From Magallana gigas (Eukaryota), in contig NC_088857.1 of the NCBI RefSeq assembly GCF_963853765.1, positions 56,544,001-56,608,000 of the forward strand: a stretch of DNA of 64,000 nucleotides, in the 5' to 3' direction. The translations under genes and the position numbers were made by a program. Below, in pieces: positions 17,147-36,249 of the stretch. How positions within the stretch are numbered: the first letter of the stretch is position 1; each line of letters starts with the position of its first letter. The notes under the pieces are model-generated. The model searched no databases and was not told the origin of the DNA. It saw nothing but the letters and a program-made list of their open reading frames with translations.

Positions 17147-17793
17147 ACAACATGACACCTAACCAAAAACAAAAAATAAACAAAGAAACAAACCAACAAA
17201 CAAATAAAAAAAAAGGTCAAAACCCAAAAAACCAAAGAAAAAAAAACAGCAACATAATTAAAAACCAGACTCAATCTACAAGATAAAATCAAAGGGACGA
17301 AGTGGCAATTTTTATTCATATTAGTTTTGATACTGCTTACCAGTATACTTATTTATATTTTCCAGTGGTTTAACAATTCTATAACTACTTTTATGTTGAA
17401 GTCAAGAGTGTGAGAATAAAAGTATGGTAGAAACCACACGCCTCTGTATATGAAGTGTTTATTTCTATATATGGGCATACAGCTGATACCTGTGGGCAAA
17501 TCTGGCCACTGTGGGTGTCCGTCAGCTGGACGTTTGTTTACTGATGATAACAAGTCTTTGAATGGTTGTTTCTCTCCCTCAAGATGGACGAATGCAACCT
17601 GATTCTATCATACACTTATCACTTCCGGATAACGCGCACCTGCTGAAGGTTTTCGTTTGATGCCATATTAATGTGAATGGTGTGTGAGTAAGGAAAGACT
17701 AAATGAAAATAACATGGGGATGCTTCACCACTCGGTGCTTTCAGAATGAATTTTCGGGAATATAACAATCGAGAATGACAATTAAAATCGAAA

Positions 17794-20700
17794 ATGAAAT
17801 GGATTACTTTGATATGTGTTATCAATTGCCTTCAATATTCAGGTAGGTTTTACCTCAATGATAGAACGAGAAGTTATCGTGTAAACATTATTACTACGTT
17901 GATTCATTTTTTAAAAGATCTATATGCAACAAAAAATCTAATGCCGAGAATTCATCGAAACTTGCAAATTGTTTTAATTATGTGGGGTCTTAATCGTGTC
18001 TTCATTTCATTTATTTTTTTTAAAAGAATGTGTTACTATTAAGCTTATATACAGTACAATACTATAAATTTATTTAAAATTCATATTAATTACGATACGA
18101 ATGATGATCTTTTTTGTTTGTTTAATTAGAATATCAAGCCTCATAACCAATAGTGGTAATAAATTTGCCAACAAACAGATTGTAATTTTTGATATGATAA
18201 CTTATTTCTTATAGTTACTGTATTTATGTGTTTGATACCAAAAATACAAATCTTAATCGAAGAAAAAATGTTTCATGTGTAATTCAGTCGCATTATAGCA
18301 AATATTTAGTCATCTAGTAATGAAAAGTCAATCATCTGTAACACATAAGAATACACAGTCCTTATATGTTGCAGTTCTTTTATTCTTGATAGTTTATTAT
18401 TTGGTAATATTGACAGTGGTCCTAAAATAAACAATATAAATAATTGAAAATGATAGTCATACATCACCTGACATGATTTCATAAAAAATGTTTATGTCCT
18501 CTTGCTATGACTTTATCATACAACATAACATCTAAGTAAGAAATAATATGAAGTATGAATAATGTAATAATAATGTACACCGTTTTCAAACCTAAGTAAG
18601 GAATGCTGTATTAGGGCTTCCGGTCAGTGTGACTGTGACGTCAGCATATGAGGACTGTTCAATATAAAAATATCAGGTTTTACTTCTCAATTAATAAAAA
18701 CTAAACATATCTGATAAGGAACCACTATTGTAATAAAAACGTTTCGTATCAAACAATCATTTATAACATCGGGTCATCTATTATTTTAACCTATACACAT
18801 ACTTATACACAACTGACTAGATGTCAACATTACACCAATTCTCTGACTAGAAATAAACAACTTTCGTTCGGTTAATTACACGGAACTTATTATTCCACAA
18901 AATATAGTTATAAATAGAATAATCAATAACTTGTAACATAAGCATCTGATCTAATATGAATGTAAGACAAAACTATCATTACTCACATCTATTAAACAAA
19001 AACTTAAGGTCTTTCCCCGTCAACATCTACGATGAAAATGCCGCCAAAAGATGGCCTACTGCCTATACCGTAAATTGTCCAATCAATGGACAGATTCACA
19101 AGTGTAAAAAATTAATAATAAAAATTACTTACAACCGAATACTGATATTATAACAGTTATTCATTTAGGATATAAACATAAAAATACTTTTTCATTTCCA
19201 AATTTTAACTTTTATAGAAAATGTAAATGTGAATCTCGAACCCGATGTTAAATATACTTTGCCCTCTTACACATCTTTTACCAAACAATCGGGTTCGTAA
19301 TTCAGCATAATTATTACACTCCAAGATGGAAACTAGGAACATCACTGGGAACATCAGTCTGATCAGAGTTGAGAAATGACTACATGAAGTTTATGAGCAT
19401 TAGATATGAAAAAACGTCATCATTGGGTAAACATTTGGTTGCTTACAATCTGCATAAGGTATTTTTTAAGCGTTGCACGAGTACTGCACAGCAACAAAGG
19501 TCATTCTTATCTGCTGAGGTAAAGAACTGCACCTGTTAGACGCTCACCATCTATACATCATTGTGCCAAATATTCATCTCTTTTCGGGATGGATTTTTTA
19601 TACACTGATTTTAGGTGGGAAGCGCCTATGGTAATTACCAGAAAGAGCTATATAATATGTAATGAAATTATAAGTTCCTAAGAGATAGATAACAAGAAAG
19701 TCTAATTAGATGGATTAGAAATGAAGAACCAAATAATAACTATTAATTGAGGATTAGAATCTGCATTTTATAGCAAACATGCACCTACAGTATTTTGGAA
19801 AATCAACACAATACATTCTCACATGCCTTTAAAAGATTAATATCAGATGAAAACATGAAATGTTTGTACAGTTGTTGATCCAATCAATTACTATGAGACA
19901 GAGTTTAATGTTATGTGCAAATTAAGGTGAAATAACAAAAGAAAATAATTTATTATGAGAAATCATGAAAAAATATCTGTGATATATGGGAACATTTATC
20001 CTATGTGAAAAATCATGGGATATATCCCATTTTCTTTATTTTGTGGGATTTTTTGTCCTATATGGGAGAATTAATCCCATCTTTTAACAATTATGGGATT
20101 TTTTCTCCCACATGGGACAATTTATCCCACAGTACTTTTTCTCCCATGGGATTTTGGTGGGGTTTGAGATGGGATGAAAAATCCCACCAAAATCCCATGG
20201 GATTTTGATATTTGAGAGACAATTATTAGAAAACTAGAGCAATGTGTACATTCATGCTGACATGATAGGATCAAAGTAAAATGTCCCACCAAGATATATA
20301 AACAAAAGTAAGCTATGTCCAACAGAAATGGTAGCTAAAAGCCCGGACCTTGTCATGTCCGGACTTAAATGTCGCCCTGTTCACTTTATCATACAACATA
20401 ACATCTAAGTAAGAAATAATATGAAGTATAAATAATGTAATAATAATGTACACCGTTTTCAAACCTAAGTAAGGAATGCTGTATTAGGGCTTTCGGTCAG
20501 TGTGACTGTGACGTCAGCATATGAGGACTGTTCAATATAAAAATATCAGGTTTTACTTCTCAATTAATAAAAACTAAACATATTTGATAAGGAACCACTA
20601 TTGTAATAAAAACGTTTCGTATCAAACAATCATTTATAACATCGGGTCATCTATTATTTTAACCTATACACATACTTATACACAACTGACTAGATGTCAA

Positions 20701-23700
20701 CATTACATCAATTCTCTGACTAGAAATAAACAACTTTCGTTCGGTTAATTACACAGAACTTATTATTCCACAAAATATAGTTATAAATAGAATAATCAAT
20801 AACTTGTAACATAAGTATCTGATCTAATATGAATGTAAGACAAAAATATCATTACTCACATCTATTAAACAAAAACTTAAGGTCTTTCCCCGTCAACATA
20901 TACGATGAAAATGCCGCCAAAAGATGGCCTTCTGCCTATACCGTAAATTGTCCAATCAATGGACAGATTCACAAGTGTAAAAAATTAATAATAAAAATTA
21001 CTTACAACCGAATACTGATATTATAACAGTTATTCATTTAGGATATAAACATAAAAATACTTTTTCATTTCCAAATTTTAACTTTTATAGAAAATGTAAA
21101 TGTGAATCTCGAACCCGATGTTAAATATACTTTGCCCTCTTACACATCTTTTACCAAAAATAAGATATATTGTACTGAAAATTCAGTCACGTAGACACTA
21201 TTTTCGCTGACTGAGATTTAATCTTGTGTGTTACACCTTCATTATCCCTCCAACAGCGGGCTCCCCTCCATCAGCCCCTGGTGGTGTCCGCGTGGTGTAC
21301 AGGGAAGCCTCCTTCATTGTGACGTGGGACGTGCCCCGCCGGACGTACGGGACGGTAACTAATTACGTGGTTCCGGTCACCATCCTCCCCGAGGTTAACC
21401 AAACGGTGTACAGGTCACAGATACCCCTGCTCGTCCTTGGTATGTGGTTCCCCTACCATATTTTCTTTTAAATAATTTAAACATATACACTGAAATAATA
21501 TAAAATCTGCCTTTCATTTTATCTAATATCGACATATGGATCTAATTGGTATTTTTTATATTAATTTAGATGCAGGATCCGAAATAGGGAAGATGTTCTA
21601 TCTCACTGTTTCCGCTGAAAATAAAGACGGCCTCAGCAAGCCGTCACGGCCATTCTACATCCGGTCACGTAATGACAACCACCTATATGCGAAATTATTT
21701 ATACGAACAACATCGTGCGGTCATATTTCTGGTAAGAAGTAATTTTTGGAGATATTGTAAGTTTCTCTCTCTGCCTTTTTCAGCGTGTGGGGAGGCACTC
21801 ACCGTTACACCTGGATCGACGATAACGTTGACCTCGCCCGGCTACCCGGACCAAGTCGACAGAGGGGTCATCTGTCAGTGGGTTCTCAACACAACCGACA
21901 CCTATCTCATTCAGTACCGCTTTGTCCTCATTGACTTCACGGGGGACTCCCAGACAGGAGGACAGTCGTGTGACGACACCTTCCTTTCTCTGTCAGACGA
22001 TCAAAGACCGACCGTCAAAATCTGCGGGAACAGATCGGAGCAAGATATCCAACGGGGTCCTGTCGACAAGTTTTCATTCTCCAGTGGAATCCGAAGCAGA
22101 ATTAAAAAATTCAAAGTAATGATTACAGCAAAAGGTAAGATGATTTATCATAAAATTCCTGAAATAGAATTGATTAAATTAAAGTGTTTTTAATGTCGGT
22201 GTAACTTGTATTTTAAGATATATTTCATGCTGCAAAACTAAATTCTGTCCAAATCTGGTCCATTCAATGCTAAGGCGACATTTGTCTTGTTTCAGTGAAA
22301 CCTCCTGGCCCACCAACGGATATCAAAATGACGTCAACTAGAACTAGTATATCAATGACGTGGTCCCCTCCGATTGGACATTACGAACCTTTGACCTCCT
22401 ATACTCTACGTTATAGATTGTCAAACTACGAAAGGGAAATTGTGCTCTCTCCTCGCACTCCTTGGTTCAGCATTAATACTCTAAATTTCAAAGGACAGCT
22501 TCTGGTTTTTAATATTTACGGAAATATCAGTGATACAAAGGGGCAAGAGAGCAAAGAACAATACTTCAGAGCTCGTGAGTATATATCCTACTATGTTCTA
22601 TATATAGCCCATACGTAGTACAAATAACAATATTGGCAGCCGTGTTGGTTTTTCAAGTCTTTGGATATAATTGCAATTTCGTTTCTTTTTAAAGCATGTG
22701 GTGAACATTTACGTTTACCTGGGTCGAGAGAGCTACAGATAAGTTCTCCTGGATACCCACGTCCCTACACCCCCGGGATAAGCTGTACCTGGGTAGTGGA
22801 CAACCCCCAACAGGACAACCTGACAGTTACAGTGGTACACATGGATATAGAAAGCAGTTTGTCCTGTAGTAGTGACTATTTATCTATATCCATCGGAGGG
22901 AGTTCCAGAAGATGTGGGAAAATACTGAGACCCATAAGTTTAACAACTGTAGAAAAATCTGTGAAAATTTCGTTTCTCTCGGATTATAAAAATCAGGGAA
23001 ATGGATTTTTGATTGAAGTAAAAACGGCAGGTAAGTTCATGTATTAAACCAACTTTTGTTTTGTTGAATATATTTTGATGGAAACTACCATATTTTTGAA
23101 ACAAGTCCCAATCAATTCGTTCGGGCTTAACTTATTCATCGGTTGTAATAGGTGAAGAGAGAACTTCATCGCCACAGACTGATCTAACGCAGTGGACGGG
23201 CGTCACCTCAGCGGCTCCCCTTGGCGGTACAGACACAAAGAGTGTATCTTCTGGAACTGACCGACTCACGATTAAAACGACAGCCAATGAGCGACTGACG
23301 ACTGAAACCAATAAGCGACCGACGACTGACAATGTTCAATCGTTTATACATGCTTCTACGACTGAATCTCGTCCATCAGTGGCCACTACAATACAATCTA
23401 CTCAGATTCCCGGTGAACCCTTACATTCATTAGATGCTTCCGAGATGACGACCACATTTTCTCAGCAGTCACAAAATCATACCCCATTAAAAGGCAGCAG
23501 CTCAAATATTTATTCACAATCTTTGCCCTCTCAAGCTCACGTTTCAGTTTTGTCATCAACCTCAACAACATTAGAACAATTTAGGAAATCATCTGCATCA
23601 TACATTCCTAAAGCAACTGTAGCAAAATCACTGCCTTTATCATTATCACTGTCGTCCTTGTCAACAACATCAACATCATCATCATCATCACTATCACTGT

Positions 23701-24045
23701 CAAAATCAACCATTTCAGGGCAATTATCACACACATCAAGAACCCCGTCCAACACACATACACAACTTTCAACAGCGTTATCTGCTACTTTAAATTCTTC
23801 TATTGTTTTGTCATCAATATCTTCATTAACGTCCTCCTCATTGTCATCAACATCATCCTCACTGTCATCTATTTATTCTTTTGAACAAACTCAACCAGTG
23901 CCAACAACAGAGGCGCCCTGGTCACTGTCTTATCCTGAGATTATTGGAAGTAGTATAGGTAAGCTCATCCAACATCCGGAATAATTTGAATCAAAACGGC
24001 AAAAAAAATTGTTGATTGCGATTGGTTGATATTTAAAACAGAAAA

Positions 24046-24081
<36 letters not shown>

Positions 24082-27000
24082 TTTGAAATATGTAAAAGAG
24101 TAAGATTTTGCTAGAACAAAATTATTATTATGTAAATATATTGGGCATTTTTTGTTATTTCAGAAGATCTCGCCACGCTGTTTGCTACACGTGTACATCA
24201 AAAGAGCTTTACAGATTGTATATATTTTTAATGTTATTTTTTCTGTTTTTGCTTTAGAACACGCTGTGCATAATGTTTCTATTCATCTTGAGTTTATAAG
24301 AAGAAGGCGATATCGCAAGAAATCGATATCGAATAATATCAACATTCTATCAACACTACACGACAAGGTGAGGTTTGTTAAGGAACGCAACTCGTGTTCA
24401 CTTATTACAATTATCTACATTAGATCATTATCTTAACATTTAGAAATATTTTCTATTGTCTATTAGTCAAGTTTAACGTAACTATATGAAGCTTATTTAC
24501 AGAACATCATAAAGGAATTATTCCGGATCCCTGTTCAAAATGTGTTAAGCATTGTAATAAAGAAACGTCAATTCATGTTATTAAACTATTCTTGCAATGA
24601 AATCACAATAATTTACAAATAACGCAATGACAACTGAGACCATATATTTTCAGTTGTATACTGTCTTCAAACATCCCTCGGGTATACTTCAGGATTTAGC
24701 ACTACGAATCATAGAAGCGTATGTATTGTTCACTATTATACCAATAACAACTACCGGTCTATAGTTTAGTTTCTTCTAGTAGACCAGCTTACATGTACTA
24801 TTCAATATTAACAGGGACCCGCTGTTTGTGTCACTCGTTCTGATATACAGTGTACCGAAGCTGTTGATACAAATGAAAACCGACGACGATTTTCGACTCA
24901 TCAAATTTATCAACGACACCGCCATCAATGAACTGTCGAAAGACACTCTAACTTTTGGTGAATGGACACTGAATTGCAATAAATTATCCCAATTTCGAAC
25001 TATGAAAGCGTTTTGTAAGTCATTCAGAAAAACCACATTATTAGCAATACAGCAATATTGAAAATTTTATTTGGGTTGTTTTTTTACTCGAAAATCTATT
25101 TCTAACCGAAAAATGAACAAAACCTGTTTAAAAGCAGCTATGTTATAGAGCTTTGTTACTGAACAACAACGTCTTGAATTAAATCATTATTAATTTTAGA
25201 TGCTCAAGAAATTACCTCCCCTTGTACGCTAGTTGTCGGAGTTTGCGGCAAAAATTCTTCTTGTGCCACAGATACAACCACGAAATTTGGCATTACGTGT
25301 GTCAAATCAAACTCCACCGGCACAGCCTCAGTGCAGTCAACAGGAAGGTGAGTGATTTATATCACAACACAATATTTCTCCTTAAAAATTGACTTGAGTT
25401 AATCTTCGCAATCTCCTAAGAAAAGGTATTCATAAGATACAAATCAAAGTACTGAAGAACTGACGGGGGTTGATTTTGTCGATGTTTTTTTATTTTAAAA
25501 TCAATGATATGTTATTTTGCATGACAAGTACATGTATTTTCTAATTTGAATTACGCACATTTTTATAATATGAATTTTTGGACTTTTTCGACAAGAATGT
25601 CGAGAAACCACCATATAATTAATGTTAAATAATATTTAAAGATAACATTTATTCAATCAAACTATGTATCAGTGATAGAAATATTTCTCGAAAATTGTAT
25701 GGATCCAAGCAATATTGAACTCTAGTTTCGTTCAACCAAACGCTCGGCTGACACCGTAAATCTCCGACAAGGATTTACGGACACAGCCGAGCGTCAAGTT
25801 GAACGAGACTATATTGAAATGCATATGACTACAAAAAATATTTAAATTGGTCGTACCATTTAAAATCTGACTATTTTTAAGGTATTTAGAAATAAGTTTA
25901 CTTGAAAAACAATGCTTTAGCATATACATTACATCGAATTTATCAATTATTTTCAAGAACTAAGTCTTGTCAGCAGCAATGATTTGTGCTGAGGTCCAAA
26001 CACTGTTTCACTTTTGGTTTGTCTGAGTAACTGCATAGGAGAGTTGATTAAAATCAACTCCCAAAAATAAACATTCTTTGAGTATTCTAGCGAGATCAAA
26101 TACGGTCGGGGTTGATCAATTCCAATAAAGTCCCTAGGGCTTTATGATACTTTGATCAGATCCGACCGTACGTAATTTATCTCCTCGTAATAATTAATGA
26201 ATAATTCTTAAATACTAATACATATATTTATATTATTTATATAATTTTTAGCAATTGTATGGTTAAATATATAAACAACCATTGATTACATGTAACTGTA
26301 TTGAACTAAACATTACAAAATCGATGCGTAATGACATTACAAACACCCTGGATAACGTCAATATATTTATATGATTTTCCCCCAGGGCAGATGGCCTGAC
26401 CCCGGTGATAGTTGGAGGCTCTGCCTCAGCTGTTGTTCTCCTCATTCTGATCGCCGTCCTCATCATCTGTCGTGGGTGTCCCAGACGATCTCTCCCTGTT
26501 ACTGTGAGCAGATGACCTATCGATTCTATGATAGCAATCATTATCAAAGTGATCCAATGAAAAAGATTTACAGACCCTGAAACGTACTACTACACCAAAA
26601 AAACGTGCGACTTTCGTGCGAGAAACGTTTCGTGTAAACCGTTTAGCGTTTCGTGTAAACCGTTTAGCGTTTCGTGTGAATCGTGAAGCGTTTCGTGTAA
26701 ACCGTTTAGCGTTTCGGGCAAAGCGTGCAGCGTTTCGGGCAAAGCGTGTAAATCGTTTCGGGCAAAGCGTGCGAGAACCGTGTGAAACGTTCATCAGATT
26801 TCATTCGGAACTCTCTGAAAATTTAATTGTTTTAAAATAGCGCTCGTGTTAAACATTACTTTAAACTGATTGGCAAAACTCCTTTGAGATATTCTCGTGA
26901 AAAAAATCTATAAGAAATTATATACTTATCTTTTTACAAAATTGAAATAATTTCTAACAAACAAAAGATAAGTACGCGTATTTAAAGAAGACTAGTTACT

Positions 27001-29062
27001 ATTCGGCTGTGTACAACCAGTACACATAACCTCGGACATCGGGTAAGACCTGCACCTGGCTGAACCTGTCAATCAAACTTTGTGTATTCGTTTTCATTGG
27101 ATGGTCACGCGTCTCTTTTTTTGTCAATAGCCAATAGAAATTTAATGACTTCAAGATAGTCGGAATCAGTATTTGTTGATGCACACAATTTCAACGATCG
27201 ATTATTTACATGTAACATTAATTTGAACAAAATTGAATGAAAACATAGAAAGAAAATATACCGTTCATTTCTATGAAATGCGGGAAGTAAATTCTTTTGA
27301 ATCCCGATTAAAAATAGTTCTACAAGTTATTATTTTAATTATTTAAACACTGATAACGGAAAACAACAAGTAATTAACACACTGAAATTTTCCTAAAATG
27401 TACACATGCAATTAATTATTATGGGAATCTGTATGCATGGTACTTAATTCAAATAGATTATGATAGATATATTCTACGCCGTTATGCGGGGTGCCGGTTA
27501 TGTATACGAATATTAAGACAAAAATCTAAATTATTTTTTATTTTTTGTTCTTTTCGAAATCCGAAATAGAAATGACAACTTTCTTTATTGTTTAATCTAT
27601 TGATTTTTCCCTGTGATATTATTTACGGAACATTTATTTACGCGAATGTTTCGACATAAAAAAAATTAGTCGGTTGTTTTATAGCATTTTTCTAACTTAT
27701 GTGACTAATTAGATTTTACATAGCTTTCAAAATTATCAATGTAAATAATTACAGGTTTATTTACAGTAAGTATTTTTACATCGTATTCTCTGAAACCAAT
27801 AAAAATATTAATGTGAGAAGAAAAAACAAATCCCGCCGAATACTGAAAAACCAAATTATCAATGTAAATAATCACAGGTTTATTTACAGTTAGTATTTTT
27901 ACATCGTATTCTCTGAAACAAATAAAAATATTAATGTGAGAAGAAAAAACAAATCCCGTTGAATACTGAAAAAAGCGATATCAGTTTGTAATCATACGGA
28001 TTTTTTTTTTGGTATTGAATATTGTGTTACGGTAACTTTTTTCTCTGAAATATTTATTATTTACGGTACCAATACGAATCATGGATATTTCTTTTGAGCA
28101 ATAAATATATTTATAGAAGTAATATTTTTGGCTAATTCGGTGAATAAATAATTTTTTGCTTTAAATATAAGTACTAAATTAATTTAATCAATCAATTCAA
28201 TACTTATGTACATATATGTTTCTAATATCAGTATTTCTATTATTTCGTGTTTTCTTAAAATTAATTCTTACTAACAGAGTCAGGGTAAAAATCCGAGAGG
28301 ACCCGAATCGATCAGGATAAAAGCGTGTCCAAAGCGTGTGAAAAGCGAGCAAATCGTTTCGTGCGAGAATCGTTTCGTGTAAACCGTTCAGCGTTTCGTG
28401 TAAATCGTTTAGCGTTTCGGGCAAAGCGTGCAGCGTTTCGTGTAAACCGTTCAGCGTTTCGTGTGAACCGTTTAGCGAGCGTGTAACGAGCGTGCAGCGA
28501 GCGTGTGGTGTAGTAGTACGTTTCAGGGTCTGTAGATGATTTATTTCAATAAAAAGTTCACATATAAAGAAACCGTCCACAATAAGTGTCTGTTGCTTGT
28601 CGTTCAGATTAAAGCTGACTATAAAATAATTATTTACAATGAAAGGAAAATAGAGTTGACTTATTAATGATAGATGAAAGAAGAGTTCACTGTTTTGTCA
28701 CTGCAGCAACATCGGCCGTTCAATGACATTCTGCTACAGAGTCGGTACATCGGCGACAAGAACGTACAGTTCACGGCTTTCTCGTCCAGAGATCTGAAAA
28801 CCAACAGGAAGCGGAAAAAGGCCATAAGCGTGTCACTTCCGACGAAATCAATCAAGTCCCCGTATATGGTAAGATGATTGATAAAATCTACAGAATTATA
28901 GATATCATAAATGAAACTGAGATGTGATTTTTTACCTAAATCATGTTGTAGAATGGATTACTGGTAGAAAAATTGCAGCAGTTGGATTTCATTGAAGACA
29001 AGAAAACATTAAAACAGAGACTCCGGATCAAGTACCGTTCACGACGTAGTAACTCTCTGTGA
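17794..29062 (+). CDS. Type I transmembrane mucin-like receptor, ~997 aa: signal peptide-FN3-CUB-FN3-CUB-Ser/Thr mucin-SEA-like-4-Cys EGF-like-TM-cytoplasmic tail. Exons 17794-17842, 21257-21439, 21570-21668, 21784-22134, 22296-22574, 22695-23030, 23152-23958, 24258-24367, 24654-24718, 24815-24957, 25200-25347, 26386-26503, 28674-28868, 28952-29062
   Basis: 14 exons splice into one open frame (2994 nt) with GT-AG junctions and matching phases. CUB signatures: CG..L..SPGYP..C.W..C..D.L..CG. FN3 signatures: PP..P..V..W..P..Y, Y.LTVSAEN..G.S. A 269-codon Ser/Thr-rich exon follows. TM is VIVGGSASAVVLLILIAVLIIC. FN3, CUB, mucin and TM are well supported; the SEA and EGF labels and the last two exons are more tentative. 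Confidence 0.8.
18510..19285. repeat. 776-bp direct repeat, copy 1 (intron 1 of the FN3-CUB gene)
   Basis: Near-identical to 20383-21158 at a constant offset of 1873 bp. Confidence 0.93.
20383..21158. repeat. 776-bp direct repeat, copy 2
   Basis: Near-identical to 18510-19285; produces the duplicated ORFs at 18956 and 20829. Confidence 0.93.
26571..28532. mobile_element. Non-autonomous TIR DNA transposon (TA target site, Tc1/mariner-like), 1962 bp
   Basis: Perfect 27-bp TIRs cagaccctgaaacgtactactacacca (26571-26597 and 28506-28532), flanked by TA on both sides. ~21-bp subterminal tandem arrays (cgtttcgtgtaaaccgtttag) at both ends, an internal 123-bp tandem duplication (27730-27974), and no transposase ORF. 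Confidence 0.88.
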
Positions 29063-29620
29063 ACGTAGAGACATGGAGACATTTCAACAGTTTGTCGGCA
29101 ACTGGACGGAACAACCAACATAAGCATAGAGACGGGGCAAAACCCTGCTAGCATGGAGACAGTACATGTAGCAACAAGGTATCATCTCGTGGAAACAACA
29201 GCCATCAAACATTGACAGAAACTGTCGAATACATCTCTCTGAAATGAATATCTTACCGGGATTAAGAGCCTCTGAACATCTTGCCAGGGCAACAACTCAT
29301 AAACATATCATTTATTAAGTTAAAACATTCCAGAGCAACATGCAACCTCTGGAATCTCGCCCGCATTACAGCTTGTGAACACACCGGAGCAACCGCGTTT
29401 GAATAACGATACAGACAAATTGCACGTGAACATCTTACAAAAGCAACAGTCCGTCACTTTGAACAGTGAGAAAAATTAACAGTTTGTTAACATTAAGGCA
29501 GAACTACGTTATCTCTACCTCTTTTGAGTCAATATGGTATTTTTACAACATTGGTTATTAATTAAATACACAAAATAAAAGACATATGGAAAATATTGCT
29601 AAAGATGTGTCGTTATTATG

Positions 29621-36117: not shown

Positions 36118-36249
36118 NNNNNNNNNNNNNNNNNNNNNNNNNNNNNNNNNNNNNNNNNNNNNNNNNNNNNNNNNNNNNNNNNNNNNNNNNNNNNNNNNNN
36201 NNNNNNNNNNNNNNNNNNNNNNNNNNNNNNNNNNNNNNNNNNNNNNNNN
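36118..36249. other. Assembly gap (132 N)
   Basis: Run of N about 60 bp downstream of the stop codon of the secreted coiled-coil gene. Confidence 1.

Follow-up and report, generated by a model that had tools for sequence, protein, structure and literature searches.

Transmembrane mucins (MUC1; MUC3/12/13/17) are type I proteins in which a long Ser/Thr stalk is followed by a module of ~125 amino acids (aa), a small Cys module and a membrane span, behind which come a juxtamembrane Cys and a short tail. All of these features recur in the product of LOC105322449, a gene of the Pacific oyster Magallana (Crassostrea) gigas that we analysed within a window of 64,000 nucleotides (nt) (contig NC_088857.1 of assembly GCF_963853765.1, positions 56,544,001 to 56,608,000, forward strand; positions below count from the first letter of the window). 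However, the oyster protein begins with an FN3-CUB-FN3-CUB head that is absent in mucins, its stalk is low in Pro and without tandem repeats, it has neither a SEA or EGF profile match nor the G|SVVV motif, and its CQC-like and YxN motifs are not conserved among oysters. We propose that it is probably a bivalve-restricted, uncharacterised mosaic type I membrane glycoprotein that serves as a stalked receptor or adhesion protein, and not a MUC1-type mucin.

Other described proteins share parts of this layout. Matriptase (ST14) and enteropeptidase (TMPRSS15) are single-pass proteins with both SEA and CUB domains, and resemble the oyster protein in having CUB together with a juxtamembrane module; unlike them, it is type I rather than type II, carries FN3 domains in place of LDLa repeats and a serine protease, is non-catalytic and has a SEA domain that is at most putative. 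A CUB head, a single membrane pass and a short conserved tail are likewise found in neuropilins, CDCP1, NETO and Caenorhabditis elegans SOL-1/LEV-10, but none of these alternates FN3 and CUB or has a 269-aa Ser/Thr stalk, and the kinship lies in the CUB domains only. The heterodimerisation domain of Notch has a SEA-like fold with a furin S1 loop, to which the polybasic loop of the juxtamembrane cassette of the oyster protein can be likened, with a two-chain receptor as a possible consequence; the two regions have no sequence similarity, however, and a strict furin consensus is present in some oyster species only. Finally, the C-terminal control region of TASK-1/TASK-3 (PMC4760375) resembles the oyster C-terminus in having basic residues followed by S-x-COOH, an arrangement kept from oysters to Dreissena, although these are unrelated classes of protein and the likeness is one of motif sequence alone.

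The domain combination is a variant among familiar invertebrate mosaic surface proteins, and no characterised family with it was found. Bivalve genomes are rich in mosaic surface proteins that are specific to single lineages and await assignment of roles in immunity, settlement and fertilisation. Among these LOC105322449 is a clean case, being single-copy and expressed, with exon phases that show module addition (a phase 1-1 cassette that is absent in Dreissena), and the acidic triad of its second CUB domain, its polybasic loop and its C-terminal motif provide testable handles. The automatic name 'Cubilin' and the analogy with MUC1 are both corrected by the analysis, which opens no long-standing question.

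Gene structure and transcript

The locus, at 17794-29062 on the + strand (ATG to stop), is a single-copy, expressed gene in a window of AT-rich animal DNA. Its product is the 1005-aa 'uncharacterized protein LOC105322449' of NCBI, which is already in public databases. Reading the three + frames from 17.7 to 29.3 kb and inspecting the borders gave 14 coding exons, all bounded by AG/GT, with a coding length of 3018 nt (1005 codons plus stop). The whole-codon translations of 14/14 exons are exact, in-order substrings of the database protein (P0029). A natural transcript, contig L011 (Logan, run SRR8856671; 3931 nt), carries the same 1005-aa product and, when aligned to the window, breaks exactly at the 14 exons, with a 5′ untranslated region (UTR) reaching from at least 17378 and a 3′ UTR to at least 29558. 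Since 3931 nt is far too short for a genomic copy, L011 represents a transcript, and because it joins all 14 exons the alternative that they belong to separate genes fails and a single gene stands. RNA runs contain 0.31-0.36 of the sampled words from 21200-29100, approximately the share of exons in that interval.

The first-pass annotation, made from the letters alone, had laid out these exons almost exactly, as judged by the P0029 substrings and L011 junctions. The exons that it described all lie on the + strand between AG/GT borders; the donor after 24957 and the length of 997 aa give way to 25014|GT and 1005 aa. With the donor after 25014 the product gains 19 residues (EWTLNCNKLSQFRTMKAF-Y), which are kept in orthologues of other genera, the segment called SEA-like becomes 125 rather than ~105 aa long, and a fifth, non-conserved Cys (C814) comes to lie upstream of four invariant ones. 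Searches used single exons first and then P0029, which equals the exon translations. The exons, with the evidence for each in brackets, are as follows.

Exon 1, 17378..17842, + strand: 5′ UTR (at least from 17378), ATG at 17794 and signal peptide MKWITLICVINCLQYS, ending in phase 1 (L011 positions 1-468; P0029 residues 1-16).
Exon 2, 21257..21439, + strand: first part of FN3-1, phase 1-1 (L011, P0029, Pfam fn3 on P0029/P0096).
Exon 3, 21570..21668, + strand: second part of FN3-1, phase 1-1 (L011, P0029, Pfam fn3).
Exon 4, 21784..22134, + strand: CUB1, phase 1-1 (Pfam CUB E 2.6e-5 on the exon; L011, P0029).
Exon 5, 22296..22574, + strand: FN3-2, phase 1-1 (Pfam fn3 E 9e-6; L011, P0029).
Exon 6, 22695..23030, + strand: CUB2, phase 1-1 (Pfam CUB E 1.1e-15; alignment to solved structures; invariant columns).
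Exon 7, 23152..23958, + strand: Ser/Thr-rich stalk of 269 codons, phase 1-1 (composition, repeats, dN/dS, P0029).
Exon 8, 24258..24367, + strand: start of the juxtamembrane module, with a conserved N-V/I-S sequon and the polybasic R-[KR]-R loop (L011, P0029, orthologue alignment).
Exon 10, 24654..24718, + strand: middle of the juxtamembrane module (L011, P0029).
Exon 11, 24815..25014, + strand: end of the juxtamembrane module (L011, P0029, orthologues).
Exon 12, 25200..25347, + strand: four-Cys module, possibly half an EGF (invariant Cys, P0029; no Pfam match).
Exon 13, 26386..26503, + strand: membrane span and CRGCPRR (P0029, orthologue alignment).
Exon 14, 28707..28868, + strand: tail blocks PFNDILLxSRYIGDKNVxFTAF and PTKSIK, ending ...PYM (P0029, orthologue alignment).
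Exon 15, 28952..29558, + strand: NG..., the C-terminus KLxQLxFIED...RSRRSNSL, stop at 29060-29062 and 3′ UTR to at least 29558 (L011, P0029).

The numbering skips 9, which had been given to an open frame at 24503-24619 that was not used. This frame was rejected as an exon, being absent from both the complementary DNA (cDNA) contig and the annotated protein; it is exon-like, has a good acceptor (CAG at 24502) and sits in the intron between exons 8 and 10.

Each of exons 2 to 7, which encode FN3-1 (two exons), CUB1, FN3-2, CUB2 and the stalk, is symmetric, with phase 1 at either end. The alternation of FN3 and CUB on phase-1 exons that had been noted at first reading is thus seen in the exon phases as well as in the Pfam matches, and the description of an exon-shuffled mosaic type I membrane protein built from phase-1 modules holds. 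For the module, Cys and tail exons, the oyster genome yielded no paralogue. Literature searches on the locus, the protein, the run identifiers or the FN3/CUB combination in molluscs returned nothing relevant.

Older oyster models of LOC105322449 are truncated or mis-joined (P0162, UniProt K1RQJ2; P0151, A0A8W8NNZ5). One of them passes from CUB1 to the stalk and membrane exon and reads through the donor of exon 13 (…PVAVSR); the other is a UniProt fragment automatically named 'Cubilin', which is a misnomer.

Extracellular head, stalk and cytosolic tail

The order FN3-CUB-FN3-CUB is backed by Pfam matches above the curated cut-offs for both families. The whole protein has two CUB domains (PF00431; 75.5 bits against a cut-off of 21.4, E 5e-21) and two fn3 domains (PF00041; 40 bits against 25, E 4.7e-10), with fn3 reaching 45.3 bits on P0096, and no further Pfam domain was found in it at E<=1. 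Among solved structures, the best relatives of CUB2 are cubilin, PCPE-1, MASPs, neuropilins and C1r/C1s, with cubilin 3kq4 at E 1.5e-26. The Ca2+-binding subtype of CUB domain has an acidic triad (Glu, Asp, Asp) in odd-numbered loops. In CUB2, residues E373, D381 and D417 are invariant among orthologues and, by alignment only, share columns with the E/D/D residues of the cubilin and PCPE-1 CUB domains, which we take to be Ca2+ coordinators in those templates. Ca2+-binding CUB domains often bind their ligand via the Ca2+ site (PMC8051872). By eye, CUB1 is without the full acidic triad; of the globular domains it is the least conserved, with 35-40% identity between genera.

The stalk, encoded by exon 7, comprises 269 residues as first annotated, of which 26% are Ser and 16% Thr (42% together). 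The term 'mucin' in the strict sense is not supported for it: Pro accounts for only 5.6%, and Tandem Repeats Finder detected no real repeats, giving just two tiny arrays of 2-2.6 copies inside the exon. Between genera the stalk is variable in length and 22-30% identical. Its ratio of non-synonymous to synonymous substitution rates (dN/dS), estimated from two Crassostrea cDNAs (L011 and L041), is 1.15 versus 0.12-0.41 elsewhere in the protein. By this measure the stalk evolves neutrally, and we regard it as a mucin-like spacer kept through its composition rather than as a repeat-built mucin domain.

A single membrane span is followed by a tail of 100 aa. In the same cDNA comparison the FN3 domains and the tail have dN/dS of 0.12-0.15, and the CUB domains and the two juxtamembrane modules 0.32-0.41; with a value of 0.15 and 65-66% identity between genera, the tail is as conserved as the FN3 domains. 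The CRGCPRR that follows the span and the YMNG motif formed across the last junction (Y-M|N-G, 28868|28952) are both present as first read, but the MUC1-like tail that they had suggested is not borne out. At the CRGC position orthologues have CRGC, CRRC, YRKC, RQKC or YRRC, so that the second Cys (C907) alone is kept, and the Dreissena relative likewise places a Cys at the edge of the membrane. YMNG or YVNG is kept in three Crassostrea sequences, and other genera have SNDKNG or SYDKNG (Saccostrea) and GYDRNG (Ostrea). Since YxN is limited to Crassostrea, a Grb2-type pYxN site is not a conserved property of the family.

The conserved parts of the tail are the block PFNDILLxSRYIGDKNVxFTAF, a basic cluster followed by PTKSIK, and a C-terminal block KLxQLxFIEDxxxLKxRLxxKYxSRR[ST]NS[LV]-COOH. 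The tail end, R-x-R-R-[ST]-N-S-[LV]-COOH, resembles a 14-3-3 mode III trafficking signal, as far as a short motif can indicate. The form R-x-x-S/T-x-COOH, adjoining paired arginines, occurs in 5/6 family members (RRSNSL, RRTNSV, RRTNSL), including Dreissena. In TASK channels, the mode III motif R-x-x-pS/pT-x-COOH overlaps a COPI signal, and phosphorylation and 14-3-3 binding override COPI retrieval (PMC4760375). Oysters and Dreissena share the tail, so that a likewise conserved cytosolic partner is to be expected. Inspection by eye led to the rejection of canonical dileucine, YxxPhi and class I PDZ motifs as candidates in the tail.

Relatives were sought with HMMER and word-index protein searches. 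Among thousands of multi-CUB proteins, a HMMER scan with the CUB2 exon against 1.84 billion representatives recovered the LOC105322449 protein and, from Saccostrea, an orthologue of 959 aa. Word-index searches that used the C-terminal third, a full-length profile and a C-terminal profile matched proteins of Magallana/Crassostrea, Saccostrea echinata, S. cucullata and Ostrea edulis, all named 'uncharacterized protein', and two isoforms of Dreissena polymorpha, the latter being the only family members outside Ostreidae in these searches. Orthologues in S. echinata, S. cucullata, O. edulis and other Crassostrea have the same layout. The D. polymorpha relative shares the FN3-CUB-FN3-CUB head, the stalk, the membrane span and an end of the form ...FIED...RLRRTNSL, but lacks the juxtamembrane cassette. 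The family is therefore at least as old as the split between these bivalve lineages, and the cassette would be a gain in the oyster lineage or a loss in that of Dreissena. Annotated isoform X2 of Dreissena (P0158, compared with P0157) is without the entire Ser/Thr stalk, which suggests that the symmetric stalk exon is alternatively spliced there.

The juxtamembrane cassette and competing readings

The cassette spans residues 702-826 (125 aa) and is encoded by exons 8, 10 and 11, which together make 375 nt running from phase 1 to phase 1, so that it is itself ready for shuffling. It is 47-60% identical between genera, has a dN/dS of 0.37 and invariant hydrophobic positions, and both of its N-glycosylation sequons and the R-[KR]-R loop are invariant; by these measures it is clearly a constrained unit. 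The alpha/beta pattern attributed to this segment was seen by eye, and no tool confirmed it. Both the cassette and the four-Cys module behind it were found in oysters only.

Based on these features, the favoured stalked receptor or adhesion protein would bind an extracellular protein ligand with its head, mainly via CUB2 and its Ca2+-type acidic triad, while an O-glycosylated stalk would keep the head clear of the membrane. Microbes, mucus and gametes, which the first-pass annotation put forward, are putative targets only. The cassette may act as a folded spacer or joint, possibly cut by a proprotein convertase at its R-[KR]-R loop, and the conserved juxtamembrane Cys might be palmitoylated. 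The tail would recruit conserved cytosolic partners, and the C-terminus may gate delivery to the surface in the manner of TASK-1/3, with phosphorylation and 14-3-3 overriding a basic COPI retrieval signal. Several points weigh against this proposal. The CUB2 triad comes from alignments and not from a structure, and the convertase site fits the strict furin consensus in some species only. The interpretation in terms of 14-3-3 and COPI depends on one short linear motif, which is altered in S. cucullata (RSRSTNSV, with the Arg shifted by one place) and has CSRR instead of RSRR in Ostrea. The absence of the cassette from Dreissena is derived from annotated proteins only.

It is unlikely that the protein is instead a signalling transmembrane mucin of the MUC1/MUC3 type, combining a SEA domain that does not cleave with an EGF-like module, a CQC-like motif and a pYxN site for Grb2. 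The succession of an O-glycosylated region, a conserved module of ~125 aa, a Cys module and a membrane span does match such mucins, and language-model look-alikes, for residues 700-830 as well as for the Ostrea orthologue, fall into SEA clusters with scores of 0.85-0.87, which lie below the 0.9 line and serve as leads only. However, the SEA identity proposed in the first-pass annotation was not supported by any of three kinds of search. Pfam gave no match for the cassette at permissive thresholds (E<=5-10, exons and whole protein), and the locus was not listed in a scan of the oyster genome with the SEA family PF01390; a five-sequence profile matched no solved structure at E<=10, including solved SEA chains; and hhalign returned a probability of 0.1% for the cassette against a control profile (A6; 35 columns) built from the first exons of genuine oyster SEA domains found in the PF01390 scan. 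Since this control matches the solved SEA domains of TMPRSS11, ADGRF1, MUC1 and MUC16, it is a valid partial SEA profile.

Prediction of the fold with AlphaFold2 was uninformative. A run on 185 aa with 5 sequences gave a mean predicted local distance difference test score (pLDDT) of 38.6 and one on 125 aa with 8 sequences 43.6, too poor for a fold search because the alignment is shallow (5-8 sequences). The lack of the autocleavage motif had been noted correctly: the expected place of G|SVVV is taken by ADPLFV, which spans the junction of exons 10 and 11, and by TDSLYV, FNSIHV, HRSVNV and YNSMIV in orthologues. Membership in the SEA family is thus unsupported at the sequence level, and the look-alikes are the sole positive pointer, as leads, to a SEA-type fold.

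The Cys module bears on the same comparison with mucins. EGF-like domains have six Cys, paired C1-C3, C2-C4 and C5-C6. Four invariant Cys (C835, C842, C848, C860), as first described, are spaced C-x6-C-x5-C-x11-C, which fits the first two EGF disulfides, but identity as an EGF domain is not sustained, as there are four Cys instead of six, with no C5/C6 before the membrane, and no Pfam EGF match was obtained. Further against a signalling mucin are the stalk without tandem repeats and with low Pro, the YxN motif, present in three Crassostrea sequences but absent in Saccostrea and Ostrea, the retention of one Cys of CRGC, and the Dreissena relative, which does without the module.

We also regard as improbable a shed or processed protein for adhesion or recognition (of gametes or microbes, or in larval settlement), whose head is released or non-covalently held after a convertase cut and whose remaining stub is devoid of signals. 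In line with such a protein are the conservation of the R-[KR]-R loop early in the module, the fast divergence of CUB1 (35-40% identity) and stalk (22-30%) between genera and the restriction of the gene to bivalves. On the other hand, the tail is with the FN3 domains the most conserved part (dN/dS 0.15), which argues for a cytosolic function, and dN/dS exceeds 1 in no domain but the low-complexity stalk.

Two readings of the cassette itself appear very doubtful. It could be a very diverged, non-autocleaving SEA-type module that is cut by a convertase to give a Notch-like two-chain receptor, with a head removable by force and delivery gated through the C-terminus and 14-3-3, which, if true, would make the protein a new class of receptor, specific to bivalves and triggered mechanically or by proteolysis. 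A cassette of no known fold, inserted in this lineage (possibly de novo or by exonisation) as a spacer only, would agree with the lack of relatives outside Ostreidae in the word-index searches, of a genome paralogue at E<=10, of a confident AlphaFold fold and of the cassette in Dreissena, but its dN/dS, its identity between genera, its invariant hydrophobic positions and its two sequons are typical of a folded domain.

Introns, neighbouring sequence and other SEA loci

Intron 1 contains a recent tandem duplication, seen as two direct copies of at least 300 nt (18510-18809 and 20383-20682) that are 99% identical and 1873 nt apart; the same event accounts for the duplicated open reading frames at 18950-19150 and 20823-21023. 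In intron 13, two minisatellite arrays with a 21-nt unit (26591-26774 and 28315-28498) lie in the same orientation ~1.7 kb apart, possibly as the two ends of a mobile element. These arrays yield long spurious open reading frames on both strands (RVNRLAF... repeats). Downstream of the gene, a run of 132 N at 36118-36249 marks an assembly gap or masked sequence.

Elsewhere in the oyster genome, an intron near position 37 of the SEA model recurrently interrupts SEA domains (loci L012 and L020-L038). Several SEA loci are clustered on contig C8, for example at 13.82-13.86, 18.58-18.62 and 24.56-24.59 Mb, and are probably tandem SEA-bearing (mucin-like) genes.

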